Shown: piece by piece, positions 1,921 through 51,507 of the stretch
Numbering within the stretch: the first letter of the stretch is position 1
How the letters are laid out: every line of letters starts with the position of its first letter
Source: Calcarisporiella thermophila CBS 279.70
Taxonomy: Eukaryota > Fungi > Calcarisporiellomycota
Assembly: GCF_041956535.1 (NCBI RefSeq)
Contig: NW_027192210.1
Coordinates: forward strand, 318,021 to 382,020
Direction of reading: 5' to 3'
DNA: 64,000 nucleotides
Notes under the pieces: model-generated
The model's input: the letters and a program-made list of their open reading frames with translations, nothing else
Databases searched by the model: none
Told to the model about the DNA's origin: nothing
Translations under genes and position numbers: made by a program

Positions 1921-2835
1921 TTAAGCACGTGGTCTCTGCATCGGCGGCGAGAAGCGGTTACGGAGAGCGGCACCCACAGGATTGGGGACGGGGCGGAGGA
2001 TGTCACCTAGGCCCTGGTTTGCTCGCACGCCACCAATAGTTTGGGCACCACCACGAGCGAACCCGCTGAGAGTGTTGATGACGAAAGCAATTGGGTTGGT
2101 GCCGATGTCGGCAAGGGTGTTAGGAATACCAATGACGTCGAGGTTGGGGCCAGTGGCGATGATACGGCCATATCGGTCACGAGGGAATCCGGGGCCGATT
2201 TGTTGGCGTTTAGCAAACGACCGCAAGAGATGTTCAACATCCGCGTTGTCAGTCTGTGCTTGATCATCAGTCTCTGCTTCCTCGCTGTGGAACGTCTCCT
2301 CCTTGGCTACTTCTTCAGACTCGTGATTGCTCTCGTCCTCGGGGAGATCACGCTTGCGGTAAGCGGTGGGCCGTACCCATACGCATCCAGCGAATCCAGT
2401 GGGACTGTTGAGCCGCACTAAACACGTGCCACCAGGGCCCATGCAGCGCACATCCGAGGGGATGGTGAAGTCGACGTTGTAGAGACCCTGGCCACCAATG
2501 CCGGCAAACCCGGGGATGTTTCGGGTGATGGGAAGCTGCCTGCTGAATCCTCGGCCGTCTCGGGTGTCGATCATGGCAGCGAGAGGGCCTCCACCATCGA
2601 GGTTGTGGGTGCTCCAGACCCAACGGTTGGTACCATAGTACACGGGGTTGGGGCTGGTAGGAGGAGGAATCTCGACACCAACTCCACAGGGCGATTGCGA
2701 CGTGAAGCGAATACAGTCGAAGAAGCCGCGGTCCGTGCGGACGTTGAATGCACGGGGCTCGACGAGCTTACCGTGGCCGAGGACAAGCCCGGCGCAGGAT
2801 GCAAGAACAACAAGCTTTGAGAAGACACCGACCAT
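1921..2835 (-). CDS. Secreted precursor (304 aa): signal peptide, His1-starting Egh16/GAS1 (DUF3129)-like domain, RKR, acidic spacer, KR, 94-aa C-terminal peptide
   Basis: ATG at 2835. Signal MVGVFSKLVVLASCAGLVLG is followed by HGKLVEP. THNLDGGGP and CxGxxxxCLVRLNSPTGFAGCV resemble the Egh16-family motifs HQVNADGAGP and CxVRCxN..GPFGGC. Intronless, TATA box upstream. Confidence 0.75.
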   Translation of the reverse strand: MVGVFSKLVVLASCAGLVLGHGKLVEPRAFNVRTDRGFFDCIRFTSQSPCGVGVEIPPPTSPNPVYYGTNRWVWSTHNLDGGGPLAAMIDTRDGRGFSRQLPITRNIPGFAGIGGQGLYNVDFTIPSDVRCMGPGGTCLVRLNSPTGFAGCVWVRPTAYRKRDLPEDESNHESEEVAKEETFHSEEAETDDQAQTDNADVEHLLRSFAKRQQIGPGFPRDRYGRIIATGPNLDVIGIPNTLADIGTNPIAFVINTLSGFARGGAQTIGGVRANQGLGDILRPVPNPVGAALRNRFSPPMQRPRA

Positions 2836-2954
2836 GATTGTGTGTAAGTAATGAATGTAAAACGAATGTAATGGGTGAGAAGGGTGTGAAGATTGTTGTT
2901 GTAAAAGAGAGAAGAGTGATTTGATGCAGAAAATTGGAGAGTACAACCACGGTC

Positions 2955-2962
2955 TATTTATA
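2955..2962 (-). promoter_or_regulatory. TATA box (TATAAATA) of the Egh16-like precursor gene
   Basis: Exact consensus about 120 bp upstream of the ATG. Confidence 0.6.
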
Positions 2963-4998
2963 CGGTTGTCCACGCCTCGAGGACAGGAATGGAAATGTCT
3001 TATCCGAGAATACCTTCTGGGAAGTGGTCAGTCGCCTGAGACCTAGTGCGTTGGCCGATTAATTTCCATGATGGTCCAGGTTTTAAACAAACGACTTCGC
3101 CGGGAAATTTTTGGGTTCAATTCTATGGCGCACTCTTCGTTGCTCTTAAAACTTTCCTCAGTCACAAGATTAGACGGATGGGCCTTGATCAGTAAGTGTT
3201 TTTTGCGTATTCCATAGTATTGTGTCTCCCCGAAACTTGCGCTAACATTTAGTATAATACCGTAAAACCGTACTAGATAAAGCAATTTCCGCAAATGGAA
3301 GGAGAGCTGAGTAGGAAATGCTCACTTCCCAAATGCTTCCTTGGTGACATAGACATAGCCAATTTCCCAGGTGGTCTCAGCGGAGTTGGACAATGCTGAG
3401 GCGATCGCTCCGCTTTCTCCTCTTACCTAAGGCGCGACCTTCCTCCTTATGGAGATCCGTGGGCCTGAGCATTGTTGTGACTATGCTCAGGCCAATAGTC
3501 CCTGCAATATCGAGAGACTTGGCAGGTAAAGTAAAATATTTGCATGAGGGAGGTCGATGGTAATGCGTTGATGCGTGCGCGATACCACGAGCCGAAAAGA
3601 ACAATGGGTAGTCCACACTAAAGGCAGAGAGGAGAGCAGATTCAAAAGGGCCTAATCGGTTGTTTGTTATGCTTAGGATGTTTCAAAGGTCACCAACAGA
3701 GCTTCCTCAGGTATATCGGATCTCCACGTTTTTGGTGGAGTCAAGTAGGCAAAGCCCGGACTCAATCCACGAATTTGGGGGAAAGTAGCCACTTCACTAT
3801 GTCCAACTCTCGTGTTGTGATGACCATTATGGCTCGTGGAGCCAGCAAAGGGTGGCAGACGGTATCGCCACTTTTAGCACGAGTAGTGAGGAAGTTTGTA
3901 GAGCTCGATCTCTAGTAGAAGATTGCCTAGGTTCCCGAGTTTGCATTTAGATTAGAGAGCATTCATATGACCTAAGGATAACATATATCCTTCGATATGG
4001 CTGGTCCTTTTTTCCCCTCGATAACTCTTCGTTTGAGCACGTGGTTCTCACCTTCCCGAGTGACGGAGGCCAGGTGTGAGGAGACTTCCAAATGAAGGAT
4101 CGCCGCGATGACATCCCGGGAAGTTGGCTGCGGGCCACTCTGAACCAAGATTTATTGTATAAGCAGAGCGCTTCCTCGTGTCCCTAGGTGCCATTCCGAT
4201 TAGAAGGTCGCTTTGCATCCCCGAAACTGCTCACGTTTCATGCGAACCGTCGTGCTAGAATGGTCTCACCTTTGCCACGCACTGGCCAGGAATCCCTGAG
4301 AAATTTTGTCTCACACTGGGCCGCCTGCTCGGACCAGGGTTAAATCTGTACTCGAGCCAGCTGGGCATTGGCCAACGATGTCACTCTTCACTCGGTCATC
4401 CTGGGTTCAGTCGACCTAATTTCGCAAAGATCAACCATTCCAATCAGGCCGACTTTCACATCAAACTTACTCTTCTCTTAACACCCCACTCCGAAGCGCT
4501 CATGGCCGCGATTTCTACCCTATCACCACTAGATCCGATCTGGATGCAATCGCGGTGGTTTTGTGTCAAGTCCGCGGCTCTTTTATTCCGGCCCCTAGGC
4601 TGAAGGCTCTCTGAGACTCGGATGCCCCCAATATAATTCTTCCGATTAAATAATCAACACCTCCCCTCTTTGCAAAGGCCAGTTGCAGCTCCTTATTCGA
4701 TTTCTCCTTGAGGCCATCTCCATCCTCCTTTGGAACCATGGCCGTGCCCAAATTCGCTTATTAAACTCTATATTGGCTGGCAATTAGATAGTAAGTATAT
4801 ATTCCCGTAATAGCAACAGATAAACGGGGCTCAAGAACATGCAATAAAGTGCAACTCAAAGTACAAGTACAATGAAAGGATATATGTAGCAAAGATGAAG
4901 AAAAATAAAAAATAAAAGAGGGATCAAATTAACCTTCGCTGATAGTATACATTCATCTCCGCAGTCAGAGAAGTTAAAAAAAATTAATTAGCTATACA

Positions 4999-7900
4999 TC
5001 ACTCTATTCTCTTTCTCTTCTTTCCAAGCGAACCTCCTTTTCGTCCCTCACGTTTTCGTTTTTGAGGTTGCCGTGTGGACGCAGAAACTGTGCTGGAAGA
5101 TTCCTCGTCTAGATGAGAGCGCTGGCTGCTCCCAACCGATCGGGAGCTTGCTCTGCTTTTCCGTGAATTTCCACCCCGCCTCCTGGCTGGGGGCACTTCA
5201 TCTTCGCTAGGAGACCCAACAGTCTCCACGTCGCTCTCGTCGCTGTCCCCTGGATTCCAGATGGGAAACTCTCCAATTCGCTCTCTAAGCTTCAAGTCCG
5301 GTATCACCACTCTCACTTCAACGTTTTTCCAAGAATTGGGTTCTACAGTCCATCCCAGGTCGAAATCCTCATCTTCCTCAGATTGATCCTCCTCGCTCTC
5401 ACTCGCCGAGGCCTCCTCTGTGAAGACATCGGTATCATACTCTGCTACTCTTTCCTCCACCCTTTCTTCCTCCCTGGTTCGCCCCTGCTCCAAGTCGGCA
5501 TGATCTGCAAGCTCTCGGCTGACGTCGACCCCACTCTCCACTTTATCATTGTGCCTACCTTTATCCTCCGAGAAGGAAGTCTGTTGATCCAGGCGTTGCT
5601 GCCGAGCTTTTTGGGATAGAAAGTTGGGTTGGCGGGGAATAGTTACACGGGTTTGAATGGATCGGGAGGGGAGCGGCGTCGCTATAAGCTCGGGCGAGTA
5701 TTCGGTTGAGTCCGCCTCGGTCGGATGGTCGGGAGTAGAAGGATTCGAGGAATGAACATTCTCCAGAGGGCGGGCGTAGCTTAGTGCATCTTCGAGAGGG
5801 TCCGCACCGACACTACTGTATTCACAACATAGTTGGCTCTTCATCATCCCTAGAAAATGTTCTGGGCATCTAACTTACTCGATGATATGCTTCATTTTCC
5901 GTAACTCAGCCCGTTTCTCGGCAATTTTATCGTGTCCATAGGCCCATGACATAAACAGGGACTGAGAGGACTGCTGCTCCCCCTCCTGCTCCACTTCGTT
6001 ATCCCGTTCTATCTCCTCCTCCTCCTCCTGCTGTTCCATCTCTTGTTCCACTAGTTCCACCTGTTCCTCTTCTTCCCTTCGCTCCATTGCTTTCTCTTGA
6101 ACCCCCTCCTTCTCCAGCTCCACTACCTCATCTGGCCTAGTAGTGTGCATATTTACCTTTTGAACTGCTTCTTCCATAGATATTAGCTCATCATCTGATT
6201 CCTCTTCAAGCAGAATGGGATCTGTTGCATCTTTGACCGTTCTTCGCCCATGGGGTATTAAATCGGGACCTTGCCTAACTCTATCAAGGTTCGAGTCCCT
6301 TGGCGGTTGATTCGGGGTTGAAGTGTGTAGAATTCCTTCCATTAGGTTCTTGGTGGAGACTATAGTTGAGGTTGGCTTCGTATCGGGTTTCGTTGAAATC
6401 TGTGTCCCTTCCATCTCAGCGTCTGACAACTGACTAATTATCTCTCTTTGGCCGTTTTGCGATTCATCTTCTGAAGTCTCCTCATCACTCACCAAAATGA
6501 CGGGTTCGAGACTTGCAATCTCCAGAGTAATATCTTCAGGTGCATTCTCACACTCACGTATCAATAGCGCCAGATCTTCATAACCAAGTCTACGGAGAAG
6601 AGCCAGTTAGTATTGAATGGATGAAGCTTGCCACGTTAAAATGGCATACTTTTCGCGTAACCACCCCTGCTTTAGAGATGGGCCCTCTTGCATACTGGTC
6701 AGCTCCGCAGAATTTTTTTCCACAGGCGCTTCCATTGAATGATTGCTTGAACTACGGTGTGGTATATTCGATACAGAAACCTCGTTCTCCTCCTCGTCTT
6801 TGTTGTCATTATCCTGGTAATGTGCGTCCAATTGGGTGGGAAGAGGGTCAGAGTCAGGCGAAATCGGAACCTGTGAGGGCAGAGGGAATGGGGGTGGCGT
6901 AGACTCAATTTGTGATGAGGATGAGAGATGGTCGGCCGAAGTCGGACGCTTGTTCCTCTCTACTATAGGAGGTGGTTGCTGGGTACCCTTAGTCTGCACA
7001 TTATCAGCAGAAGTGGCGGACAAAATTATCACAGCAGACGGTATATTTGCATGCTCACGGTTTGAATTCACATAGTCCAGGGTTCCATTGGGTGAAGTTG
7101 CCATGGCAGGCGACGACGTGCCTCGATCCGATTTCTCTCCAAGAGGTTGGTTAGATAACAAGGTAGGGGTTGCCTCGCGTTCTTGAGTTCCATTTAGGGC
7201 GGCTCTCTCAGTTTGCGCCCAAGCGTCAACCTTGATTATAGGTTTTTTATAGCCAGGAACTACCTCGTTCGGCTCTGATGGATCGTTCTCGGATAGCTAA
7301 ATAGAGAGAGAATGCAAATTGGATGTGTTTAGGCTTTCTCTGACCAGTTTCTAATCTGGAAGAACTCACTTGTATGAAAGCTGGAACCGGGAGAAGCTTG
7401 ATGAACAATTTCATTTCTTTGCGAAGTAATTCAAGGAGGTTATTTCCGAGGTAACTTCGTTCGTCCGTGTCCAGGGGGCACTCCAGCTTTTCAATCAGCT
7501 ATGATATACAAAACAAGATCATGGAGGGTAGGCAATGGTGTTCACTCAATTATTTGTCCAAAGGAAATTAAATTACATCATAAGATTGCTGCTCGTATTT
7601 CTCAATAAACGCATCTCTGCACTCGGTATCAACCTCCTCCAGCCATGCAAGTTTCTCTACGGGGGTGAATACGGATTGCATCACATGCTCGAACACATCC
7701 TCTGCCTTCATCATTTTCAGCATGACGACCTACAGATAAACAGAAGTTCAATAAACGAGGTTCAAGGGATACGTTGTCTGCGTTCAACATTGTAGCTACC
7801 ACAGCTTTCAACTCAATGTAGGCGTCCAAAAATTCTGTGTACTCGGGGGATTTTTCGACTGTCAACGAAACCAGTTCATCGGCCACTTCGGATACAAGCT

Positions 7901-8432
7901 GACTTGCATCGTCGCCATCATTCATCACGGCGTCTACTGCATCAAGCGCTCTCACGCACCACTGAGTGAAGTTGGATCGCATAAGTGGTATGACATCGCG
8001 CTTCGAATCCAAATAATCTAATGCGGCATTGGAGGTATATGTGCGGAACCTTGCGAGGTGGGCGTCTAAGCAATAAAAAAATGTCGATTTTTCTCACATA
8101 TTAGTATGTAGAACAAGGCTAGTGTATTGCAATGGCACAAAGAACGTCGAATGCAATAGTGGTGGAGTTTAGTAACGCAAATTACCATAATAGAGCTGCC
8201 AATAGCGGCCGTTCCTTAACTCCAGATCTGTCTCTGCTGCCTCCTCTATAGCGCGATAAGCAATATAGTCCAACAGCCGAAGATTCTGCAGTATAAAGGT
8301 TGGGCTCAGTTTGACTCCTTGTTTTGGCCGTCCGTTATCCGATGTGATCGTATTTGACCGGATAATAGGACGCTTTTTAAGTGGAGTCAAACGTGAGTAA
8401 TCCGCCTTGGCCTGCGATTCTGATCTTGACAT
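4999..8432 (-). CDS. Uncharacterised large multi-exon, probably nuclear protein: helical N-terminal domain, acidic disordered body, C-terminal basic NLS-like tract
   Basis: Same-strand ORFs 8169-8471, 7629-8012, 6607-7161, 5875-6564 and 4999-5847 can be joined by GT-AG introns (e.g. 6590-6649). Ends KRKREGRKGGSLGKKRKRIE. Confidence 0.7.
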
Positions 8433-8598
8433 GACCGAATGTTTCAAATCATAGAGACAGTCGGGAGACAAAACAACGCGTTTCTTTCCTCTTCAATATA
8501 AAAACAAGTCACATGGTGGCTTACTTCTCGATTTAATGATGACGGTGTAAATTGATTCGACGACTTAATGAAGGATCATATCATATTTTGCACAATAT

Positions 8599-9931
8599 AT
8601 GGCTTCTCAGCTTCCCACCCGTTGTCATCAAACTCTCAAAGGACATACTGGCCCGGTACATGCAGTCAAATATAATACAAATGGCGAATATTGTCTAACG
8701 GGCGGGCAAGATCGCACTATACGGCTATGGAATCCCAATACTGCAAGTTGTATTAAAACTTACTCCGGGCATGGTAACTGGGTACTAGGAATAAGCGTGT
8801 AGGTCCAACTCTCATTTTCTTACTTTATAATCCTGTATAAAAGCTCTCAATTAACCAGTAACAATAAATCTCTTTCTTTTTTTTAAAGAGCGCCAGATAA
8901 TGCACGATTTGCAAGCTGTGGTGGGGATCGTGCAGTCTTTCTCTGGGACGTGGCCACCGGCCGGAGTATCGTTCGGTTTTCCGGGCACTATCAGAGAGTT
9001 AACTGTGTGGGATTCAATAGGGATGCTAGCGTCATTGTCAGCGGTATGGTCAAGCTTATTCATTAGTACTGGAGTTTCTTGAGCTCATATCTCTTTCTAT
9101 AGGCTCGGATGATACTACTGTACGGATATGGGATTGCAAGTAGGCCAATGAACCCTCCAGGACCGTTTCTCTTCTCATTTGGTTAATCTATCTCGATTTG
9201 CATGTACAGATCGCGAGCTAAATTTCCCATCCAGATCCTAGAAGAGGCGAAAGACGGGGTAACTTCACTACAAGTGTCCGACTACCAGATCATCACTGGG
9301 TAATTCATTTGGCCTTACCTTTACTTAGCCCCCATTCTCCAGTCTGAACTACGACTGAACCGTTTTTTTTACAAGCTCGACCGATGGCAGAACTCGAGTA
9401 TACGATCTTCGATTTGGAAAAGTATATGAAGATTACATAGGAAGTAAGTTTTCTCTACTCGACAGGATCTCCGCAAATCCATGTCTCAACTCTTTAATGT
9501 AATCAGACCCTATCACCTCTGTGCGGTTCAGCGGAGATGGCAACTGCATTCTAGTCAGCTCAACCGACAATACGCTACGTCTGATGGATAAAGAGAATGG
9601 GCAGCTATTAAATGAGTAATGCACCCGTTTCCTGCTTTTTATATATCGACTCAAGAATCCCTAACCCGTGTCCGAATGTAGTTTCCGCGGCCACAAACAT
9701 GAGAAATTCAAAATCCAGTCCTGTCTTTCCTACGATGATGCCTACGTGTTCAGCGGCTCTGAAGACGGCAACATCTATGCTTGGGACCTGATTGAGGGCC
9801 AAATGGCGGCGCAGCTCCGAGAGCATAGCAATGTAGTGACAGCTCTCGAGTATCATCCGAATGAAAATTACCTGTTGTCGGGGAGCGTGGACGGAACTGC
9901 TAAAGTCTGGGCCGTGCCCAACTTCGCATAG
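8599..9931 (+). CDS. WDR83: WD40 repeat protein, WDR83/MORG1 orthologue
   Basis: LKGHTGPVHAVKYNTNGEYCLTGGQDRTIRLWNP, FASCGGDR, GSEDGNIYAWDL and LLSGSVDGTAKVW; about 8 exons with GT-AG introns. Confidence 0.85.
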
Positions 9932-10290
9932 TCCTACTTGTAAATAGCGAATGGACTAGTAAATGCATTCTATTTATTAACAACAACAAACTGCCTAAAG
10001 AAAGAAGAATGAGAGTAACTCAAAAAAAAAAAAAATCGGAAATAATAAAGAAAGCGAGAGAAAAAATAGTTGAAAATAATATTGTGAACTAGAAATGAAG
10101 ACAATAATATAAACAAAATTTTGGTAATAATAGATTATGGTATTTTTACAGTATGTAAAAAAAAAAAAGAAGAAAAAAGAGAGAAGTAAGAGTCAACATA
10201 TCAATCAACCAGGCCCAATACAATCCAAAGCTCGAAGTTACATTCGATAAAATTAGTGAGTGTTAATAAGTTTAATTAGTTAACTAGTAA

Positions 10291-10329
10291 AGTGAGTGTG
10301 AGTGAGTGAGTGAGTGAGTGAGTGTGAGT
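10291..10329. repeat. (GAGT)n microsatellite in the 3' UTR of the C2H2 gene
   Basis: gtgagtgtgagtgagtgagtgagtgagtgagtgtgagt read directly. Confidence 0.9.
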
Positions 10330-10366
10330 ATATAAACTTGGGGTCATCGGGAGGGGGGAATGTTTC

Positions 10367-11672
10367 TCAATTTCTATCACTGAAGACCTCGCCCATGCCC
10401 AACTCCAGCTGCATAGGGGATTGTGAGAGGGGTCGCCAGTTCTGCATTACATCCATGTTGCGCATCGTTACCAACTGAAAGTCAATATCCACCCCACTAC
10501 GTTGTTGCCAAGAGATCATGGGTGAGGGTTGAGAAGGCTGCGAGTGGTCCTCGGAGCGCTGGAGATGGGTGGAGGTTTGTGGAGAAGGACGCCCGGCTTT
10601 GAAATGTATTTTGATATGCCGCCTCAAGTTACTTTGAACGGAGAAGCAGCGGCCGCAGCCCTCAACGGGGCAGCGAAAAGGTTTCTATGTGAGCGCACAA
10701 AAAAAGGATAAGCATCAAAGCAAATCCGTTAGCAGAGCTGCAAGCAATGGGGGTATCTACCTGGCCGGTATGTGAATGCATATGCGTCGCAAGGCTCGAA
10801 GGCCTAGAGAATCGCTTCTGACACACACTGCAAGGATATCTCCTCAATGGAGAGGTTCCGATTTTCGAGTTGAAAGTGAGCATCATCGACGGATCCGGGA
10901 TAGCCTTCTTTTTCTGCGAGGGGCATTTTTGTGTTGGAAGCGCCTGCGCCGAAGGAGAGGACTCCAAATATCGAAAAGAGGATAGGTCTTCGGATGGTGA
11001 GGAATTGTATTGAGATGGGTGGGAAGGTGTCGATGGCGTTAGGGTCATCATATGTCCCTGCCCGTAATTTAGGGGTGAAAAGCCAAGAAAAGATGGATGA
11101 TCAAGAGGATTGGGTGTGGAGTATAAGCGCGCGTAGCGAATCGATTCTGCGCCCTCACCTGCGGATCCGGGAGTAATGGGTGAAGATGATACAGTAGGCG
11201 GAGAGAGCATCGCCTTCTCGCCAGCATTCGATGGCGTGGCGGAATGATGCGTGTTGGACGGGAACACGAGGTTGGCTAACACTTCCGGGCTCCTTGGCTT
11301 GGGAGTTGCCGCAGTCGGTTCCAGAACGGGGTAGAGAGGAAGCGAGTGCCGTCGATAGTACGGGGAGAGAGGAGTATTAGAGGGTAGAACTACAGAATTG
11401 CGGGAATAAAGAGATTGGCCCGTGCTGGTGCCGTCGGCAGCAACATTCATGGGCGAGGCATCCTCACATGTAAAGGCCGAGAGACTAATACTTTGCGACT
11501 TCGCCGTGTCGGCTGCGGAGACGGTGGAAGAAGGCGGGAGTTCATAAGTGCCTATGCGGGGAATGCTTTCGTAGGAAAGTAAACTAGTGAAGGATGTGGG
11601 ATGCGAGGGGGAGTGCTGCGAGTGTGGAGGGGGGGTATTGAAGCTGGAATTTTTCTCTGACATTTCATACAT
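10367..11672 (-). CDS. Two-finger C2H2 zinc-finger transcription factor, MtfA-like (exons 11672-10761, 10684-10367)
   Basis: After splicing: [53 protein letters not shown]. The preceding FNSK motif resembles the MtfA family. Confidence 0.85.
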
Positions 11673-12426
11673 TAACAATCAATCTTGTTTGTTTGTGTCC
11701 ACGCAGAAATAGAGGCTGGCACGACAAGCTATTAAAGCGGGGAAATTAATGGAAGAATGACTCTCCTGTGAGCAATTGAATGAGAGAAAAGGGGGGAGGG
11801 GAGAGGGAGGAGAGGAGACAAGAGAAAGGGAAATGAAAGAGATGGGAAATGCAATTTTAAAAAGAGCAAGAGAATAAGAACAAAAAAAGGAGCAAACATA
11901 TATGAAACAAAATTTTTCACACTAGTAGAATAATTTGCAAAAAAAAATCCAGTAAGGCTATATATCCAATTCTGGACGCCTTTCACTTATCTTGCTTCTC
12001 TCATACGTTATAGGCTAATGACCTTGGCTGTGTTAATCGAAATTTTTACATCCAATATTATCCATATGGTTATAGTATCAACCCTGAGATGAAAACGGAA
12101 AAATGCTGCTCTAGGTCGTATATTGCATGTTAACTGATCACTGACAATTGCTAAAATCAAGATACCTCCTTAAACATTTTAGGAGTCCTTGCTGCCAGAT
12201 TGGATCTCTCGTCTTGCCATACTGGTTCTGAAAAAGGGTTGGATTCGTTGCCCTCTTAACTGCACTAGGAAATCCGATAAGCTCATACAAGGATTTCAAA
12301 CCTAGCGCGTGGTGGCCGAGCTAAGCCACCGGACTTCGGGCTAACGATGTCTTCGTGCATTGTCCGGCGAAGAGAAGTTTCCACCTTTTACATTCTTCCA
12401 GTTCTTCACCCAGTAGATATATCAGG

Positions 12427-13239
12427 ATGTCTAAGGTAAAGTAATGGATGCCATCCAGGACTGATGGATGGATGGATGAATGAACCTTTTGGAGCAAATA
12501 TACTCACCCGTTCATCTTGTCTTTTTCTATAGAGAGGTATGTTCATCATGTTGCATCTCGAGAGAAGAGGAATTGGGAGTGTGGTGCTCAACCACCCGAT
12601 CCAACACCCCACATCGCCCTTGTTTTTCATCTTTCCCCATCCCCCTTTACTAATTAATGCTCTTCTTTTCCGATTTCTTTTCCAGGACGCGGAGGAGCCT
12701 CTGGCAACAAGCTACGCATGACCCTTGGTCTGCCCGTCGGCGCCGTGGTTAACTGCGCAGACAACTCTGGCGCAAAGAACTTGTACATCATCGCCGTCAA
12801 GGGTATTAAGGGTCGTCTGAACCGACTGCCTGCTGCTGGCGTTGGCGACATGGTTATGGCCACCGTCAAGAAGGGTAAGCCTGAATTGAGGAAGAAGGTT
12901 ATGCCTGCCGTGATTATTCGTCAGCGCAAGGCCTGGCGCCGTCGTGATGGTGTCTTCATTTACTTTGAAGGTATGTCAAATTACACTTGCTCTCATCCTG
13001 AAAATGTTCATTTTTAACTTGGTAATCTTCGCTATAATAGATAATGCTGGTGTCATCATCAACCCCAAGGGTGAGATGAAGGGCTCCGCCATTACCGGCC
13101 CCGTGGGTAAAGAGTGCGCCGATCTCTGGCCCCGTATTGCCTCCAGCGCTGGTTCAGGTAAATATCTTATTTCGTCCCATTGGTCATACGTAGGATGGTA
13201 TCTAATAACGATATCTTTGTGAATGGTTTAGTCTTCTAA
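12427..13239 (+). CDS. RPL23: 60S ribosomal protein L23 (uL14), 140 aa; exons 12427-12435, 12533-12536, 12686-12970, 13041-13157, 13232-13239
   Basis: [37 protein letters not shown]...[25 protein letters not shown]. Confidence 0.97.
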
Positions 13240-13737
13240 GCGGACGAGTGCTTATTTTTTACTTTCAATAAAAACACGGCCATTTTCTTTATAAAATTCT
13301 TCCCTTTGGAAAAGGTGGATGATAATGTTGACATCTCAAAGCTAGACTGTGATTCAACCTTTAATTTTTATTGGATTGCATTGTCAAATTGGAGAGAGAG
13401 AAAGGGCGATGAAGGGAAAGAAGCACCCCTTTCCGCCAAATGATATCTAGGAGAATATAATAAGATGGACTCGTTATAAATACAATTCCTACTAGAAAAG
13501 ATGTAAAAGAAATATAAAATTTTGCATACTTGTATGGAAGTACATCGTAATAGAAAACGAAAGATGGAGGGAGAAAAAAAACAAAATGTTCATTGTTTTG
13601 TATAAAAAGTGGAAGAGGTTTTCTAATTTTTTTTTTCGTAATAAAACAGTTTTCAAGAAAGGATTATATAAAGTAGAAAATAAGATATAAAAAAAATATA
13701 AAAGGATATAGGTGGAAGAATATAGATTATAAAATGA

Positions 13738-16378
13738 TTAGTACCCATGCATGAACCACTCTCCGTTCCCATTTTGGCCGCCATAACCGCCCATCGCTAA
13801 TGCTGCCGCGGCAGCTCGTTGGTGTGCCGTGCTCAACCCCCCGGCCATTCCAAAGTCCCCTGGCAAACCCAATAATCCGGCAGCGCCCAGGGTCTGCATG
13901 GCGGCAACGACAGCTGCCTGCTGCGAGGCGTGGTGGGGGGGAGGCTGGTGGGGAATGCTTGGATGGATGTGTTGATGAGGAGCGGGCTGAGGTTGACCAA
14001 GGGGATGCTGGGCCGAGTATTGTGCGCGCTCCACGCGTTGTATCTTGGACTGAATGCGTTTGCCGTAGGGGGTGCTCCGGATAGCGGGCAGCAATGGTCG
14101 GATGGCCTCAATGAGTTTTGCACGGTTGATGGGATCCGCATGGTCAAGCGCTGTTTGCACAACGTAATTGCCGTAGGAATCCCTAAGTAAGCTCTCAAGC
14201 CGCTGTCGGTTCAACAGCTCCTCTAAGAGTGCATTTTTCGTGACCGCATCCGCAACCCGGATACACTTCTCAATGACATTGGAGCTGAATTTTTGCATCG
14301 ACAAGCGACAGACGTTCCCCCTGAAATTCGTATGAATAAGACGCTGCGAAATGAGATCATCATGGAGATCCAAGATGTATTGTACAACGTAGTTCCCAAA
14401 CGGATCCATCACCAGGGTCAGACCGTTGGCTATCACCTGTTCGGCGAGCTGATGAACTTGCGAGGTCGAGGCTCGGTCAATACAGCGCTGCATCACGCAG
14501 CAGCCATGGCGATGAGTGGCAACCTCGACGCATTGCTCGGAGACAGCATCATAGATGAACTGCTTATCTTGTGATGCAAGTCGATTGAGACACTTCTGGA
14601 TGACATGGTTCCCGTTCAAATCCTAGAAAAAAAAAGTTGGGATGGTAAAAACGGATCAGAAGGCAAGAGTGTTGCTAGGGGAGGTGGGAGAGGCCTACCT
14701 TGATAAGGGTTACCACGTTCCCACTCAAGGCTCCAATCACCGCACGTATTTGCTGCGGTGTGGAAAGATATTCGATCATACGCTGGACGGCGCGCGTTCC
14801 ATGCATGTTGAGCGAGATTCCGACCATCTCTGGAGCAACCGTTTGCACGAGACGCGTTCGCTGTTCGTCGTTGCAATATTCAAGTAGCTTTTGGCACAAG
14901 TAGTTTCCAAAGGGATCTAGTGAATATCCGCACAAGTATTAGTCAAGCTAGTACTTCATTCGGTTCAGGGAGAAAGGGAAGGGGGGGGGAGGATCCTCAC
15001 CTGTCATCAATTCGACAAAGTGGGGGTGAATTTCTTGAAAGATCATTTCCACAGTTTTTCTGTTCTGCTCCTCTAGTTTCTTCTGCAAGAACCGACATCC
15101 GTGCTGGTCCTTGCAAAATGAAAACAATCTTCCCTCCAAATCCTCGATCTTCACCCCAGCAAAACGGTTCGAGATTTCAATGTCGTTGTTTTTCTTTTTA
15201 CTCTTTCCATTGCCATTGGTACTACTGGATGGAGATCGACTGCTACCATTCGAGTGCATCCCATCACTTCCCTGGCGATTCAGCGGCAGCCCATATTGTT
15301 GATACAAAGCTTGGTTATAGGGGTTGAATGCTGCAAGTGCGGCAGCAACGGCTCCAGGATCAAGGAGCGGCTGAGCAGCAAGGTAGTCTAGCGGTGCTGG
15401 ATTCGTGGTCGCGAGATTAGTAGCTGAAGCATGGGCAGCCGCAAGCTCAACGGGAGAAGTGTGTTTAATGTGGGATGCACCGTTCACAGCAGAATAAAGC
15501 AAGCGATCATGCTCCAGTTCGCCAGAAGACTGAGGAGAAAAACCCCATTCCCGCAGATATTCGACTGCATGAAGGTTGGAGTTGTTCGGAGTGGCTTCGC
15601 CATTGAGAGTAGCAGAAGAGGCCGATAACTACATCCCATTGAGAGAACAAAGAAAGGAGTTGAGTAACCAGAAAAGCAGCTGTCCGCAAACATTTGCCGG
15701 CACTTACCACATTGGAACGGTTATCTCGCCCGCGAACCAATATGGGGAAACGGTCGTCGTCTTCATTTAAATACTTGCGAGCAAATAAAGAAGACACCTC
15801 TTTGTTTTCGTCGTCGTACAGGAAGCGGTCATTGAACTGAAGAGGAGGAAACGAGGGACTCTCAAGGCAAGTGTCGTCGAGTGAGAAGGCTTTTGTAGCA
15901 GAGGGTTTCGGAAGGTTTCTCCTTGGTAACGTGGAAACGCGTTAAAACCTCGAAAACATTAACCTATTCTCCATCCGAACACTTACTGCATTTCCGGATG
16001 GTCCTCATCATTCAACTGCAGACGCTCCATATCCAGCCATTCGTCCGCTTGCTTCGAATTTCTACGCGAACCCGGAAGGGAACGCGAGGCAAGTTGACGA
16101 CCTAACAAAGGGGGAGCCAATTCTGCATTTGATCCCGGACTGACGCCATCACAGCATGCATATTGATCTTCCCCCGCTGAGCGATAGTACCTGCGGTCAC
16201 CTCCTTCTTCGTAACTTGAATCAGGCGATGAAGGAGTAGAGCTCAATGGAGAAATGCGTGCTGGAGAGACTTGGTGCAATGTAGGAGCATCGGCAGCGGA
16301 AACAAGCTGATCCTTACTTGAAATGGTTGGAAGATAAGCGGCGGAGGTTGCAAGGCCATTGCAAGGATCAGAGAGCAT
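13738..16378 (-). CDS. Pumilio-family RNA-binding protein, Puf4/Puf5(Mpt5) clade
   Basis: Eight PUF repeats: KDQHGCRFLQ, DPFGNYLCQ, NMHGTRAVQ, NGNHVIQ, HRHGCCVMQ, DPFGNYVVQ, QKFSSNVIE, DSYGNYVVQ. T-R-Q in repeat 3 and C-C-Q in repeat 5 are typical of Puf4/5. Confidence 0.9.
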
Positions 16379-18183
16379 TTTTATTAGGAAGGAACAGGGG
16401 GAGAATTTAGTTAGAGATCTGAAGGAGGATATGCAAAAAGAGATTCTTTTGTGGAATGGAATCAATAAATGGCCTTTAATAATGTAGTAAAGAGGGAGAG
16501 TGTGAGAATTAGATGACCATCTAGTAAAGGTGATGAGTTAATTACCTGCAAAGAGTACACGAGACAAAAAAAAATAATTATGGTTAGCTAGTGGGAAGAT
16601 GATGGTCAATAAAAACACACGCAATATTGAGACAGCTGGTATGAATGAGAATGAGGAAATGTAAGTAGACTGTTTACAGAACAATAGAATAAAGCAGAAA
16701 ATGAAGGGAATGGGGATGCAGCAAAATAATCTCAAAAGATGGCCAAAGCAAAGGCAAGAGCATCTACAGACACCAGGAAGAAGGAGAGAAAGAGATGGAA
16801 AAAGCAAAAGTCTAGTTGAAATATAAAGGGAAAAGGGGGGAAGCATTTACCTCTATTATTTTCCGCGCTCTCTCTGTGAAACGAAAAATAAATGATAAAT
16901 AAAATGCAAGTAAAGAGACGGGGGAAAGAAAGAGTTGAAAGAGACACAGCTAAAGACCCTGCAAAGACGCAACTGAACAAATATATGCACGTGCGAGCAA
17001 GGAACAGGGAAGGAGAGAAAAGAAAACACAAGAGAGCAATGGAGGAATAAAGAGTTGCGAGATTTCGATTCGGTAACGAAAGCGTGAATACGCTTCCAAT
17101 TATGGGCAGCAATGAGATCGCGCCAAACTGCGGATAAGCATATTTGTCGGAAAACGTGTTTTTGAATGATTGTTGGGTGTGGAAGCTAGCTCGCCGCTTG
17201 CGACCCGTTTCCGGCTAGCATGAGCTCCCCCTGGGCCTTGCAAAGGCACTGCGAAGCTGCGCCCAATGAGCGCAGGTGCCTTAATTTCGTAAGCAAACCC
17301 TGCTGCGGCATATTGCAACTGATCGCGCTTCTGTTAGTTGCGTAAAACCTGTGATCCAGGAAGACCCCCAGTGGGCCGGCAAGAGGCCCAAACCGCGAGC
17401 CGCGCAAAGATCGAGAAGGGAGGCGGCGGAGGGCGTAGAATCGATAGGCAACTGTGGGCGCGGGAAACAAAGTTCAACCATTAAAGCAGATGCATCACAG
17501 CAGACAAGCTTCTTGAAAAATAAGTTTGGCAGGTTTTGATCCTGCAGCTATCCAAATGACGCGGCAGGGTCTCAGAGTCCCTCACCTGTTAGAGGGCGAG
17601 TCCTGGAGCCCTCTCAACCGGAGATGCGGCACAAATACTGATGATGCAGACTCTCAATAAATCATAAGCAAACAACAATAGCTACAGTAGATTTTTGCAC
17701 GACTTTTAAATTTAATTTCGAAAGAGTAAACAGCCGAGGTTGCAATACACTGGTATTGTTATCACAAGCTCGCAAACTCACTGACTCCAAGTCTGTTTCG
17801 ATAGAAAAATTCAATATAGTGGTCACTTTTTATCTAGAAAACAACATATAGATATAGCACCAAAAGCTTTCTTGTGCTGAAATAAGATAGGAATAGGGTA
17901 ATCATTAAGTGTTTTATTAAGAGATATGTATATCTAATGACGAAGAGATGATAAAAGAAAAATAAAAATAAAAATAAACGGAGATTGGTCTCTACTCACG
18001 GGAAATGCTTCATAGTAATTTCCTATAACAAGCATAGAAAATGCATTAATACGCCTGTTACAATATGACTTAACTGTATTCTATGTGAAAATGTCAGGTG
18101 CATACCTATAACCTCCAATAGCTAATAAAGTCTCTTGGAAGCCTCAAACAGCAACTGTTTTTCTATTGCAAGCAGAAACACGC

Positions 18184-18213
18184 TCTCCTCTTGCCGCAAG
18201 CGACAAGAGGAGA
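18184..18213. repeat. Perfect 10-bp inverted repeat (hairpin) upstream of the SCJ1-like gene
   Basis: TCTCCTCTTG-ccgcaagcga-CAAGAGGAGA. Confidence 0.8.
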
Positions 18214-18507
18214 ACGCCCTATATTCGAAACAACTCATGGGAAGAGCATCATTTCTCATAGGACTTGCTTCTAGCACACATGCACAGATATAAAGGGAAG
18301 AAAATGCTTACCTTATAAAAGAGCGACTGACCAACAAGTAAATAACAAAGATGTTAAAAGCCGTGTCAAGCAGTAAATATATATATAAACAAGCAAAGCC
18401 ACATTCAACATTGACCAATAGGCGAGAGACATGTTGATTCAAGTAAAGGGCACGTCTTCAGAACATTTTTATCGGTATTAAAGTATTCAATTCAAATAAT
18501 TGTGGGC

Positions 18508-20051
18508 ATGCGATTAAAGGCGATCTCCTTGTTCGTCTTGGTGCTCTCGGCGTGGGTTATATCCCTGGCGCTGGCTGGCCGCGACTATTATGATGTTCTA
18601 GGAGTTTCGCGGGATGCTAGCTTGCGGGAGATTAAAAAGGCATATAAAGTACTTTCAAAAAAATACCATCCAGACAAAAACCCAGGTGACAAGGAGGCAG
18701 AGGCCAAATTCGTCGAGCTAGCCCAGGGTGAGTAGTTTTTCCTGAAGAAGTATGCTGAGCTCGTGTTGAATTATTGAACCTGTTCTAGCCTACGAGGTCC
18801 TGAGTGACGATGAAAAAAAGCGCATATACGACCAATATGGAGAGGAAGGTTTGAAGCAGAGCGGACAGGGATCACAATTCCACGATCCTTTCGATATATT
18901 TAGACAATTCTTTGGTGGCGGTTCTATGAAATTCGGTAAGAATTCGTAGCTCATGGCCTCCCTTCGACTGTTTTACATCATCACCCTAACTTATGTCCGC
19001 TAAACTGCTTGTCTATTCAGAATTTCACACCGAACGAAAAGGACCCAGTCTACAGATACCCATTGACATAGAACTCCAGGACCTTTATCTTGGAAAGGAA
19101 GTTGAGGTGCGTGATAAGAATTAGGTTTGCTAGTAAGTTTGCTGTCCCCACTAATAGGACACATTGTAGTTCGATCTTTCTAGACAAGTCATTTGCGACC
19201 ACTGCCGTGGCTCGGGTGCCAAAAGCCCCAATGATATAGTCACTTGCACTTCCTGTCAAGGTCATGGTGTCAAGGTGGTTCGTCAAGCCCTTGGGCCTGG
19301 TATCTTTCAATCCTTCCAGTCCACATGCGACAAGTGTCACGGAACCGGAAAGATCATTCGCAAGGCGTGCGACGTCTGCAAGGGCCGCAAGGTCCGTCGT
19401 GGAAACGAGCAACTTACACTGGTGATTGAGCGTGGCATGGTGGAGGGAGACACCATCGTATTTGAACGAAAAGCAGACGAAACCCCCGATATCGTGCCTG
19501 GAGACTTGATATTTGTGCTAAGGGTGCTGCCCCATCCTATATTTACTCGGGATGGAAACGATCTTTACGCTACGCTGGACATCACCTTGACTGAATCTCT
19601 GGGCGGTTTCGAGAAAGAGATATCCCACCTAGATGGTCATAAAATCGTTTTGAAGCGTGATCAAATCACTCCTCATGGTAACTTCTTCTTTCTTTTATTT
19701 TCCTCCTCTCCATGGATTTGACCCGCTTTCCCGATACGAATTGAATGGTTGAATATTTTGGTAGGCTTTGTGCAGGAAATCGCTGGAGAAGGAATGCCCC
19801 ACCATAATTTCCCCTCGTTTAAGGGTAAATTATTTATCGAGTACTCCGTCATCTTCCCCATCTCAGTCACTTCGGACGTAGTAGATGGTAAGCATCACTC
19901 TAGGCTTAGTGCGATTAATTTGCGCGACTAATGCTTTCTTTCCGAATTAGCCCTTCAAAGTGGTGCCAAGTATGATCCCTCCATCGAAACCCCATCGTTT
20001 TCGAAGCCTTCGACCAAAAACAAGAAGAAACTTGAGCACTCAGAGCTCTGA
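18508..20051 (+). CDS. SCJ1: ER-lumenal type I DnaJ/Hsp40 (Scj1-like)
   Basis: Signal peptide, J domain with HPD, four CxxCxGxG-type repeats, C-terminal DnaJ domain, ends HSEL*. Confidence 0.88.
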
Positions 20052-20479
20052 CGATGCTTCCTCTTTTGCTATGTATTTGTAAATATTAGAGTTTTCATCC
20101 ATTAAACCTGGCTGGTTTCTATTTGACCCCAAGGCTCTACTTGACTAGACTTTAATTTTTATTCACTTTTGAATAAAGCAGCGGAGCAAGTGTGTGCGTG
20201 TGTGTTTTTATTGATATTGCAAATCTGTCCGTACATTTAGCATTCCTAGCAATGCTATATTTTTTCTCTACTAGTGTTTGCTTGAAATTTTTTTTTACAA
20301 CGTTTATTAAGATTGGAGGGGGAGAACGAATAAATGAATGGATGAATGAATAAGTGAATGAATGATTGTATTGGTCGTATACAACTGAAATAATGACTGA
20401 TGACATGATGTAGATCGATTTATATGCAATTATTACACTAAAAGCAATGACATTGTAGACTATCTCCTTGAATTACCGC

Positions 20480-21153
20480 TTAACTGGATGTCTTCTTCTT
20501 GGTCTTTTTGACCTTCTTCACTCGCTTCTTCTTGGTCACTGGGCCATCCGAGGAAGACGACGACGACGAAGAGGACGATGACTTAGACGACTCCTTTGGT
20601 TTCTCCGTCACCGTCTTCGTCTTCTTCTCCTTTGGCTTCTTCTCGCTCGACTTGGATTTCTTCTCGGTGGACTTTGGCTTCTTCTTATCGCCATTCTTTG
20701 ATTTCCCACCCTTCTTCTCCCCGCTGCTGGGCTTGGACTGCTGGTTGGAAGCGGGGGCGGGGGGCGCCGTGGCCGAACCTCCTCCAACGCGGCCCACTCT
20801 GCCGTTGAGTGGATTGAGGTTCACTGGGCTCAGAACATTACCGACCCTCTCGTTTCCGTTGGGCGAAGCTGTACACAAAGAGAGGGGAAGAGGAATTAGA
20901 GCAATGAACCATGGGAAAGAAACAGGAGGGGGGTATGCATACTGGCGTCGGCTCCAGCCCTTGCTAAACCTCGAGCCGTGTTGACGATCTGGCCAAGGGG
21001 ATCTCGGATGGTGTCCAGAATGGTGTCGCGCAGCCCAATGGGGTCGAGAACGTCGACCTGGCGCTTGTCGTGGTGGTGGGACGTGGGCTGGCTGGCGGCG
21101 AGCGTGGCACCCAAAAGGGTTGCGACCAGGGAAAGTTTAAGAGGGGACAACAT
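20480..21153 (-). CDS. Secreted prepro-protein (199 aa; exons 21153-20943, 20868-20480): signal, KR site, ~56-aa module, Lys/Ser-rich polycationic tail
   Basis: MLSPLKLSLVATLLGATLAA signal, then SHHHDKR|QVDVLDP. The intron has a GTATGC donor, CTAAT branch site and TACAG acceptor, and joins the two ORFs in frame. TATATAAA upstream. Confidence 0.85.
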
Positions 21154-21216
21154 TCACTTACTTTAGGATTTTGTGCCTGCGTCAATGTGCTTGTGAAAGG
21201 GGGGAAGAAGCTTCTC

Positions 21217-50607: not shown

Positions 50608-51507
50608 ATGAGCGAGAAACTCTTTAGAATAGCTATCGATGGGCCTGCCGCCTCCGGAAAGAGTAAGTGGTTGCCGGTTTTTAATGCTCTAAATCTTTTA
50701 TCTATATCATTGCGTTCACTACGCAGGCACCACCGCCAAGATGGTTGCACGTGAACTTGGATTCGGCTATGTGGATACTGGTTGGAGAAGATCCTGAATC
50801 CTTTTGTTCTCATCTAGCTGGCTGACCAGGAACTGCTTTTGATGGAATAACTAGGCGCAATGTACCGTGCTGTGACCCTCGACGCCCTTGCCAACTCATT
50901 ATCACCCACTCTGGAGAAGGATTCCCAAGGCATTGCTCGGCTGGCTGCCAACTCCCGCATCGAATTTGGCCCGCTACCCTCTCCACATAGCAGCGCTTCA
51001 CAGCAGGTTTTTCTCAACGGGAAAGAGGTGACCACTGACATTCGCACCCCAGAAGTGACACGCTGCATAGCTGGTGTTGCGGCCAACCCAGGGGTGCGTG
51101 CAGCTCTGGTGGGCAAGCAGCAGGCACTGGGCCGCGGTGAGATGGACAGCGGGAGCAAAGGCCACGAAGTGCACGGAAGACTAGTCCGCGGCGTAGTCAT
51201 GGATGGAAGAGATATTGGTACAGTCGTGCTGCCCGACGCAGAGCTCAAAATTTTTCTTGTAGCAGACGACGAGGTGCGTGCGCAGCGAAGATGGAATGAA
51301 ATGCGACAGGAAGACAAAGCCAGGACCAGTTTAGAAGAGGTGTTGCGGGATCTGAAAGAAAGAGACCGAACCGACAGCGAGAGGGCCGTCGGGCCTCTGC
51401 GCGAGGCAGAGGGGGCGGTTCGTGTGGATACCAGTCAATTGACGATCGAGGGGCAGGTCAGGAAAATCGTGGAATTAGCACGAGAAAGGATTGAAAAGTG
51501 GGTTTAA
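50608..51507 (+). CDS. cmk: Bacterial-type (d)CMP/cytidylate kinase (253 aa); exons 50608-50662, 50727-50780, 50855-51507
   Basis: IAIDGPAASGKSTTAK, DTGAMYRAVT, VVMDGRDIGTVVLPDAELKIFL and ERDRTDSERAVGPL. Confidence 0.92.

Follow-up and report, generated by a model that had tools for sequence, protein, structure and literature searches.

A previously undescribed secreted peptide module in the fungus Calcarisporiella thermophila, predicted to be released from an Egh16-like partner domain, and its relatives in Streptomyces

A stretch of 64,000 nucleotides of the genome of Calcarisporiella thermophila CBS 279.70 (contig NW_027192210.1, positions 318,021 to 382,020 of the forward strand; hereafter, the window) contains two genes for secreted precursor proteins, denoted here gene A (P0001 in NCBI/UniRef) and gene B (VTP21DRAFT_4918), that share a module of about 56 amino acids (aa). 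Judging from the comparisons described below, this module is an autonomous domain that represents a previously undescribed family of secreted peptides. Searches of Pfam, NCBIfam, PDB sequences, the PDB with Foldseek and the ESM Atlas yielded nothing significant for the module, in agreement with the first-pass annotation of the window, which was made without database searches and recognized no named domain. The interpretation that we favor, with a probability of roughly 40%, is that the module is a Kex2-released, pyroglutamate-capped, self-associating surface peptide.

The homology of the two copies is apparent at the protein level. The best local alignment of the gene A protein with the product of gene B exon 1 consists of 33 ungapped columns with 14 identities, exactly the number counted by hand in the first-pass annotation, and its score of 72 was reached by none of 20,000 shuffles (mean 27, maximum 61). 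Across the whole module, 21 of 58 positions are identical, close to the earlier estimate of about 21 of 57. The exon 2 product by itself gave no significant alignment with gene A, yet a family profile from which it had been left out detected it in isolation (E = 5.5e-6). The synonymous sites of A and B exon 1 are near saturation (proportion of synonymous differences, pS, 0.56), which rules out recent duplication, as the annotation had argued. Other details that it reported were likewise reproduced: the coordinates of both genes, with an uninterrupted open reading frame (ORF) in gene A and a 74-nt GT..AG intron in gene B that matches the NCBI model; the TATA boxes (Table 1); the absence of Cys from the module; and a KR/Q motif (the slash marks the predicted cut) that precedes the module by 21 residues in A and by 4 in B.

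Across the C. thermophila genome, the module and the Egh16-like domain (PF11327) occur six times each, in eight genes. Four genes are fusions with the order signal peptide, Egh16-like domain, KR/Q, module and low-complexity tail: gene A, P0002 (contig 33), P0003 (contig 17) and P0004 (contig 9). Two genes, P0006 (contig 14) and P0007 (contig 17), encode the Egh16-like domain only, and two, gene B and P0005 (contig 17), the module only; P0005, P0007 and P0003 are adjacent within approximately 6 kb, surrounded by ordinary fungal genes. In gene A, the most divergent member of the family in both domains, the signal peptide is followed by the Egh16-like domain, a KR site, an acidic spacer, KR/Q, the module and a short basic tail; in gene B, it is followed by KR/Q, the module and a Lys/Ser-rich tail, which is resembled by Lys-rich tails in P0003 and P0004. 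Gly/Leu-rich tails with GGLLG repeats follow the module in P0002 and P0004 (L004:1390-1530 (-) and L005:1195-1700 (-)), instead of or before a Lys-rich tail. All six module genes carry a single module, and there is no closing KR directly after it. A KR ends the Egh16-like domain in all six genes that encode this domain, including the two that lack the module, and this site therefore predates the fusion; in three of the fused genes, two KR sites follow one another. The peptides predicted to be released by Kex2 are 94-168 aa long. The KR/Q motif, which the first-pass annotation took to be common to the module-bearing segments, indeed precedes the module in A, B, P0002, P0003 and P0004, that is, in five of the six fungal copies; it is absent from P0005 and from all bacterial copies.

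The two precursors in the window had been described as otherwise unrelated, with the module shuffled onto different partners. Neither description holds: A and B belong to one gene family, in which there was a single partner, the Egh16-like domain, gained once and lost again in B. The module of gene B is identical to that of P0002 at 52 of 59 positions, the two are sisters in the tree (support 84/84), and their junctions can be aligned as DNA across KR/Q. Moreover, the signal peptide of B is similar to those of the fused P0002, P0004 and P0003 (shuffle p = 0/5000, 0.0006 and 0.0014, respectively) and not to that of P0005 (p = 0.62). As far as sequence comparison can tell, gene B is shown by these alignments to be an Egh16-deleted derivative of a P0002-like fused gene. 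Exon 1 of gene B is 91% identical to P0002, with a nonsynonymous divergence (dN) of 0.08 and saturated synonymous sites (pS = 0.80). By this measure, purifying selection acts strongly on the module of gene B, and because the Egh16-like domain is missing from this gene, the module would appear to work on its own. Of the six fungal module genes, gene B alone has an intron, located inside the module and recognizable by its GT..AG ends and by the CTAAT branch point in its sequence; this intron looks like a gain because gene B is nested among intronless genes. A perfect donor-like GTAAGT lies just 5' of the gene B ATG (window 21156-21161, minus strand) and could mediate alternative 5' splicing.

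The assignment of the partner domain follows from several observations. The N-terminal domain of gene A scores 33.9 bits against PF11327 (cut-off 25), and all six paralogs exceed the cut-off. The hallmarks of the Egh16 family are a His right after the signal peptide and a conserved Asp that replaces the second His (PMC6950343); both residues (H21 and D82 in P0002 numbering) are invariant in the six paralogs, as is the sequence G-H-G-K-L at the mature start when gene A is aligned with the other five (signal peptides and cleavage sites were assigned by eye). The structural model of P0002 is a beta-sandwich (predicted local distance difference test, pLDDT, 79-91 over residues 61-160), for which the best PDB match is 5msz, a lytic polysaccharide monooxygenase (LPMO) of family AA15 (Z 8.3; root-mean-square deviation 3.2 over 121 residues), followed by many other LPMOs, and the top Atlas match is an Egh16-like cluster (TM 0.48). 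The domains of P0002, P0003 and P0004 contain His1 only and thus lack the two-histidine brace of LPMOs. Both the sequences and the model indicate a domain that is LPMO-like and is no canonical LPMO. Gene A alone has a second His, His77 (window 2605-2607, minus strand), three residues before the Asp of NxDGxGP, which might be an extra copper ligand.

The PF11327 score, His1, the Asp and the beta-sandwich are shared by gene A with the known members of the Egh16-like/DUF3129 family, such as TrsA and Magnaporthe Gas1/Gas2; for TrsA of Arthrobotrys, copper-dependent oxidase activity has been reported (PMC12377627). The proteins described here differ from the known members in being compact (about 140 aa), in belonging to a saprobe outside Dikarya, placed as sister to other Mucoromycotina (10.1101/2022.06.24.497490), and in carrying, in four of six copies, a passenger that Kex2 could separate. 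A word search of one literature library found no paper that mentions both 'Egh16' and 'Kex2'. A word-based protein search with gene A returned only gene A itself, and a search with the Egh16 alignment only the six paralogs, leaving the Egh16 tree without an outgroup root; this type of search missed even paralogs that are 49% identical, and its negative results accordingly carry little weight.

The module extends beyond the fungus. A profile of the six fungal copies only, run against 1.84 billion representative proteins, detected no other fungus with the module; its matches were four small proteins (E from 8e-7 to 4e-4) and a repeat protein judged to be spurious. Two of the four come from named Streptomyces, one is encoded on a high-GC Logan contig, and one is listed without an origin. 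Further searches brought in P0014 and, in Streptomyces sp. NPDC052101, an ORF at L037:3860-4225, for a total of about six bacterial proteins. The latter ORF is identical to the fungal P0005 at 50 of 103 positions (49%, E = 4e-30), and the similarity takes in the APPxxPK leader that follows the signal peptide, the two module halves and the Pro/Gln-rich tail, with no KR in either protein. The reciprocal search recovered five of the six fungal copies (E from 1e-9 to 1e-23), and a hidden Markov model built from the bacterial copies only ranked all six fungal copies above 2,700 shuffles, gene A weakly so (E = 0.035). Three other matches were rejected: P0009 (E = 1.9e-9) is a ten-repeat protein in which the best single repeat scores 3 bits, a match on contig C22 (E = 0.16) corresponds to part of an unrelated membrane protein, and one on a Gemmatirosa plasmid (E = 0.08) was not accepted.

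Bacterial copies are rare: a pattern scan confirmed one in 185,579 GTDB species, two further samples of 400 genomes each (Streptomyces and Streptomycetales) contained none, and scans of phage, viral and metagenome sequences for the module were blank. The known copies lie among Streptomyces genes, on a complete chromosome of 9.26 Mb and on contigs of 30-135 kb, carry actinobacterial signal peptides and differ from each other; several adjoin transposase or integrase genes. Streptomyces sp. NPDC055254 has two near-identical module genes (P0011 and P0014). A module gene of this strain adjoins two related genes for small secreted proteins without a Pfam match (L039:6572-6907 and 9407-10303), which are Gly/Leu-rich and contain two Cys, one being fused to a Gly-rich domain; genes for ricin-B, CAP and I36-inhibitor proteins are found nearby. 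The Streptomyces neighbor P0015 ends in a GGLL stretch that resembles the tails of P0002 and P0004, and an ORF on the same contig as the NPDC052101 module gene, about 8 kb from it (L041:10366-11028, plus strand), resembles, by eye, the Cyt/volvatoxin type.

Alignment of all copies delineates a core of about 30 aa, (I-x-D-T)2-I-x-D-P followed by L-G-Q-V-x-N-T-A-x-G-L-x-R-G, that is, three hydrophobic-x-Asp-Thr/Pro tetrads with an invariant Pro and then a helix, after which comes an Asn-rich extension. In three short bacterial versions, the sequence stops or becomes divergent immediately beyond helix 2, and the minimal unit would therefore comprise about 30 residues. The residues P, N, T, G and R are invariant, D, T, D and Q nearly so, and the net charge of the module ranges from 0 to -4. 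In all 10 copies tested, the hydrophobic moment of both segments is higher at 100 than at 170 degrees (helical moment 0.32-0.68), that is, helical rather than strand-like, at variance with the alternating hydrophobic/polar periodicity originally attributed to the module. Helix 2 has one hydrophobic face and one face of small residues (G, N, G, G/A at every fourth position). AlphaFold models of the module are helical as well, at low confidence (pLDDT about 30-57). The periodicity and the models together point to an amphipathic helix-Pro-helix.

For the fused genes, a simple processing scheme can be proposed. Kex2 would cut at KR/Q in the Golgi, freeing the His1-bearing Egh16-like domain and the module peptide at a 1:1 ratio, and the N-terminal Gln of the latter would be converted to pyroglutamate. 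We regard this step as probable given that Kex2-type subtilases are encoded in the genome (six proprotein-convertase P-domain genes, of which the five inspected are of this type) and that Kex2 products with N-terminal Gln are pyroglutamated in Coprinopsis (PMC9769878); the predicted outcome is the Egh16-like domain and a capped peptide of the above size. Two pairs of the P-domain genes are arranged tail to tail, and the Kex2 family is expanded in this genome.

The subsequent fate of the peptide is a more tentative matter. It might pack against itself through the stripe of small residues and adsorb by its hydrophobic face to interfaces (the wall of hyphae or spores, the boundary between air and water, or a hydrophobic substrate). 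There it would form a coat of the repellent or chaplin type or act as an adhesin, while its tails, rich in Lys, Gly or Pro, would anchor it to the wall or serve as a spacer, next to an Egh16-like domain that would remodel the wall. There is a precedent in the hyphae of Ustilago, which are coated by amphipathic repellents released by Kex2 (PMC3133707), and the location of one Streptomyces copy next to other small secreted Gly-rich genes is compatible with such a role. Four observations weigh against a coat. The coats known from fungi and streptomycetes assemble into amyloid fibrils (PMC3133707), and the module core looks helical. Most of the invariant residues are polar, as would be expected of specific binding no less than of a generic surfactant, and the module models are of the low confidence given above. 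Finally, the genome is not short of surface coat, given that three secreted eight-Cys proteins score above the PF01185 hydrophobin cut-off (best E = 3.7e-21); for the same reason, we rejected the idea that the module substitutes for missing hydrophobins. Hydrophobins are usually considered limited to Dikarya, to which C. thermophila does not belong, so that either transfer or overlooked ancestry is possible for these three genes.

Two alternative functions appear to us unlikely, to about the same extent. First, the released peptide could be a membrane-active antagonist, antimicrobial or cytolytic, in which the helix-Pro-helix inserts into the membranes of competitors and oligomerizes via a glycine-zipper-like stripe while the Lys-rich tails dock. 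The amphipathic helices, the G-x3-N-x3-G-x3-G/A spacing, the net basic character of the predicted released peptides of A, B, P0003 and P0004, and the patchy, accessory spread in Streptomyces near transposase, ricin-B and CAP genes are all as expected of such an agent. However, the core ranges from neutral to acidic, three Asp share one of its faces, and helix 2 has a low mean hydrophobicity (0.05-0.35). Moreover, the bacterial copies have no conserved neighbor of the immunity type, and polar residues are conserved to an extent that is not typical of lytic peptides. Second, the module could be a specific ligand, namely a small secreted inhibitor, a signaling peptide or a metal/cation binder, with a D-T-x-x-D-T and Q-x-x-N-T-x-x-G-x-x-R surface that recognizes a single partner encountered in soil by both organisms. 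The near-invariance of polar residues across two kingdoms, and the 91% identity that B exon 1 retains with P0002 at saturated synonymous sites, would be readily accounted for; not so the long, variable low-complexity tails, which are more typical of surface proteins, the lack of a structural match, and the lack of a conserved partner or receptor gene next to any copy.

A third alternative, somewhat less probable still, is that in the fused genes the module serves the Egh16-like domain, either as a tether, permanently attached or bound again once cleaved, that keeps this domain on the wall, or as a folding or inhibitory pro-segment. The two domains have diverged in step in the four fused genes, and KR sites need not be cut. 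Nevertheless, two fungal and all bacterial genes contain the module without the Egh16-like domain, two Egh16 genes lack the module, three of the fused genes carry two successive KR sites, and no docking is predicted with confidence by AlphaFold (module pLDDT about 30). The self-associating surface peptide remains our preferred reading.

The evolutionary history of the module can be reconstructed in part. Streptomyces and C. thermophila (P0005) both have homologous stand-alone genes, with a signal peptide, the APPxxPK leader, the module and a Pro/Gln-rich tail and without KR, and we are highly confident that these genes are related by horizontal transfer. In an unrooted tree of 64 columns, bacteria are separated from the fungus (support 88/90) and gene A has a long branch; the same tree separates P0005 plus bacteria from the fused clade plus B (97/94, a starred value). 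The stand-alone form is likely to be ancestral and the fusion derived, because Egh16-only genes exist, because P0005 shares with the bacterial genes the architecture and the leader and does not share the signal peptide of the fungal family, and because the linker of P0003 keeps a remnant of the P0005 leader. An origin of P0005 by fission, as in gene B, was discarded in view of its different signal peptide, its lack of KR and the leader in common with Streptomyces. Release by Kex2, if it occurs as predicted, is a secondary fungal adaptation that does not define the module, given that P0005 and all bacterial copies have no KR before it. We further consider it likely that a copy was joined to an Egh16 gene downstream of the KR already present at the C-terminal end, with the contig 17 cluster as the probable site, and that the fusion then spread to four loci including gene A.

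With the stand-alone form ancestral, transfer from bacterium to fungus is favored, and this preference, a mild one on the whole, is strengthened by the fact that this is the commoner direction of transfer. Transfer from fungus to bacterium and donation by an unsampled third party both seem doubtful, neither more so than the other. What speaks for the former, and against our reading, is that gene A is approximately equidistant from all other copies in both domains, as would be expected if the module had arisen early in the fungus and had then been passed to Streptomyces; furthermore, its depth (dN about 0.5-0.7) exceeds that of the split between P0005 and the NPDC052101 ORF (0.29), so that with equal rates the fungal family would be older than the bacterial copies. 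The low GC content at third codon positions of the Streptomyces module genes (0.69-0.78, compared with 0.85-0.93 in many neighbors) was dismissed as evidence of direction because other accessory neighbors are equally low (0.72-0.79). The combined scenario, in which a self-assembling helical surface peptide of common descent moved from the fungus to Streptomyces, the rare direction, and spreads there as an accessory gene, while the fungus co-secretes it 1:1 with the Egh16-like domain as a wall-modifying and coating polyprotein, strikes us as improbable. That the likeness to Streptomyces reflects contamination or convergence, the module being a purely fungal, lineage-specific invention, can be given hardly any credence despite the extreme rarity of bacterial copies (1 in 185,579 GTDB species), because these lie on a complete Streptomyces chromosome and Streptomyces contigs, the fungal copies lie on contigs of 0.24-0.93 Mb among fungal genes, and convergence cannot account for 49% identity across 103 aa, leader included.

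Table 1. Positions of the features discussed (window coordinates, except the last two rows, which give C. thermophila contig positions)
Feature	Position	Strand	Remarks
Gene A coding sequence	1921..2835	-	304 aa, intronless
Gene A TATA box, TATAAAT	2956..2962	-	127 nt 5' of ATG; from sequence only
Gene A signal peptide, aa 1-20	2776..2835	-	assigned by eye; mature N-terminus His21
Gene A Egh16-like (PF11327) domain	2365..2775	-	LPMO-type beta-sandwich; His1 and Asp of NxDGxGP
Gene A first dibasic site, RKR/D, aa 161-162	2350..2355	-	at end of Egh16-like domain
Gene A acidic spacer, aa 163-208	2212..2349	-	found in gene A alone
Gene A second dibasic site, KR/Q, aa 209-210	2206..2211	-
Module copy A, aa 232-287	1975..2142	-	most divergent copy
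Gene B (VTP21DRAFT_4918)	20480..21153	-	199 aa, two exons; NCBI model P0008 gives the same 199 aa
Gene B TATA box, TATATAA	21218..21224	-	71 nt 5' of ATG; from sequence only
Gene B signal peptide	21094..21153	-	homologous to those of fused P0002, P0004 and P0003
Gene B dibasic site, KR/Q, aa 30-31	21061..21066	-
Module copy B, first part (putative helix-Pro-helix core), exon 1	20943..21048	-
Gene B intron, within module	20869..20942	-	74 nt; GTATGC..CTAAT..TACAG; exons joined identically by NCBI
Module copy B, second part (Asn-rich, GNE..PVNLNP), exon 2	20807..20868	-
Gene B Lys/Ser-rich tail	20483..20760	-	predicted released peptide: 39 K+R, 15 D+E
P-domain genes	C5:1110032, C5:1111919, C7:757755, C7:759502, C17:258385, C19:558104
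Hydrophobin-like genes	C25:89122-89352; C18:373349-373579; C18:374809-375051

Elsewhere in the window, an ORF at 50851-51504 (plus strand) resembles, by eye, a cytidylate kinase of bacterial type.

Among known systems, the closest parallels are the KEX2-processed repeat proteins (KEPs; PMC9769878) and the Rep1 repellents of Ustilago (PMC3133707), which share with the module genes a secreted precursor, dibasic sites and Cys-free amphipathic products that are probably pyroglutamate-capped; KEP-type proteins can, in addition, join a peptide and an enzyme domain, as in C. cinerea 365456 (PMC9769878). Unlike KEPs, the genes described here have one module per precursor, no tandem repeats and no sequence match, and the module also exists without KR and in bacteria. 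Rep1 gives rise to ten or more released repeats of 34-53 aa, as opposed to the single module and the predicted peptides of 94-168 aa in C. thermophila. With chaplins, rodlins and hydrophobins, which are amphipathic proteins of small size secreted by filamentous microbes of the soil, the analogy is purely functional; no chaplin or rodlin family matched the module in Pfam (E<=10 and E<=1) or NCBIfam (E<=5). Chaplins are widespread in Streptomyces, whereas the module is limited to a handful of strains. Hydrophobins differ in that the module has no Cys and is predicted to be helical rather than beta, and the PF01185 scan matched only the three loci in Table 1, none of which is a module gene. Candidalysin, released from Ece1 by Kex2, is an amphipathic helix-Pro-helix peptide as well; the module core is, in contrast, neutral to acidic, and the Pfam and PDB sequence searches, which did not include a pairwise alignment to Ece1, gave no match.

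Taken together, these results describe an unnamed family with a minimal core of about 30 aa that can be easily synthesized and with natural variants in two kingdoms. Because its range is narrow, one fungal species and about six bacterial proteins, its general importance would be modest unless an activity is shown. Within a single genome, however, all stages of recruitment can be seen: a stand-alone gene of bacterial type, fusion behind a predicted Kex2 site, dispersal, and loss of the partner. For the Egh16 family, which is still little understood, the findings add a non-pathogenic context and a partner peptide that is predicted to be co-released, both of which may bear on LPMO-like roles of this family at the cell surface.

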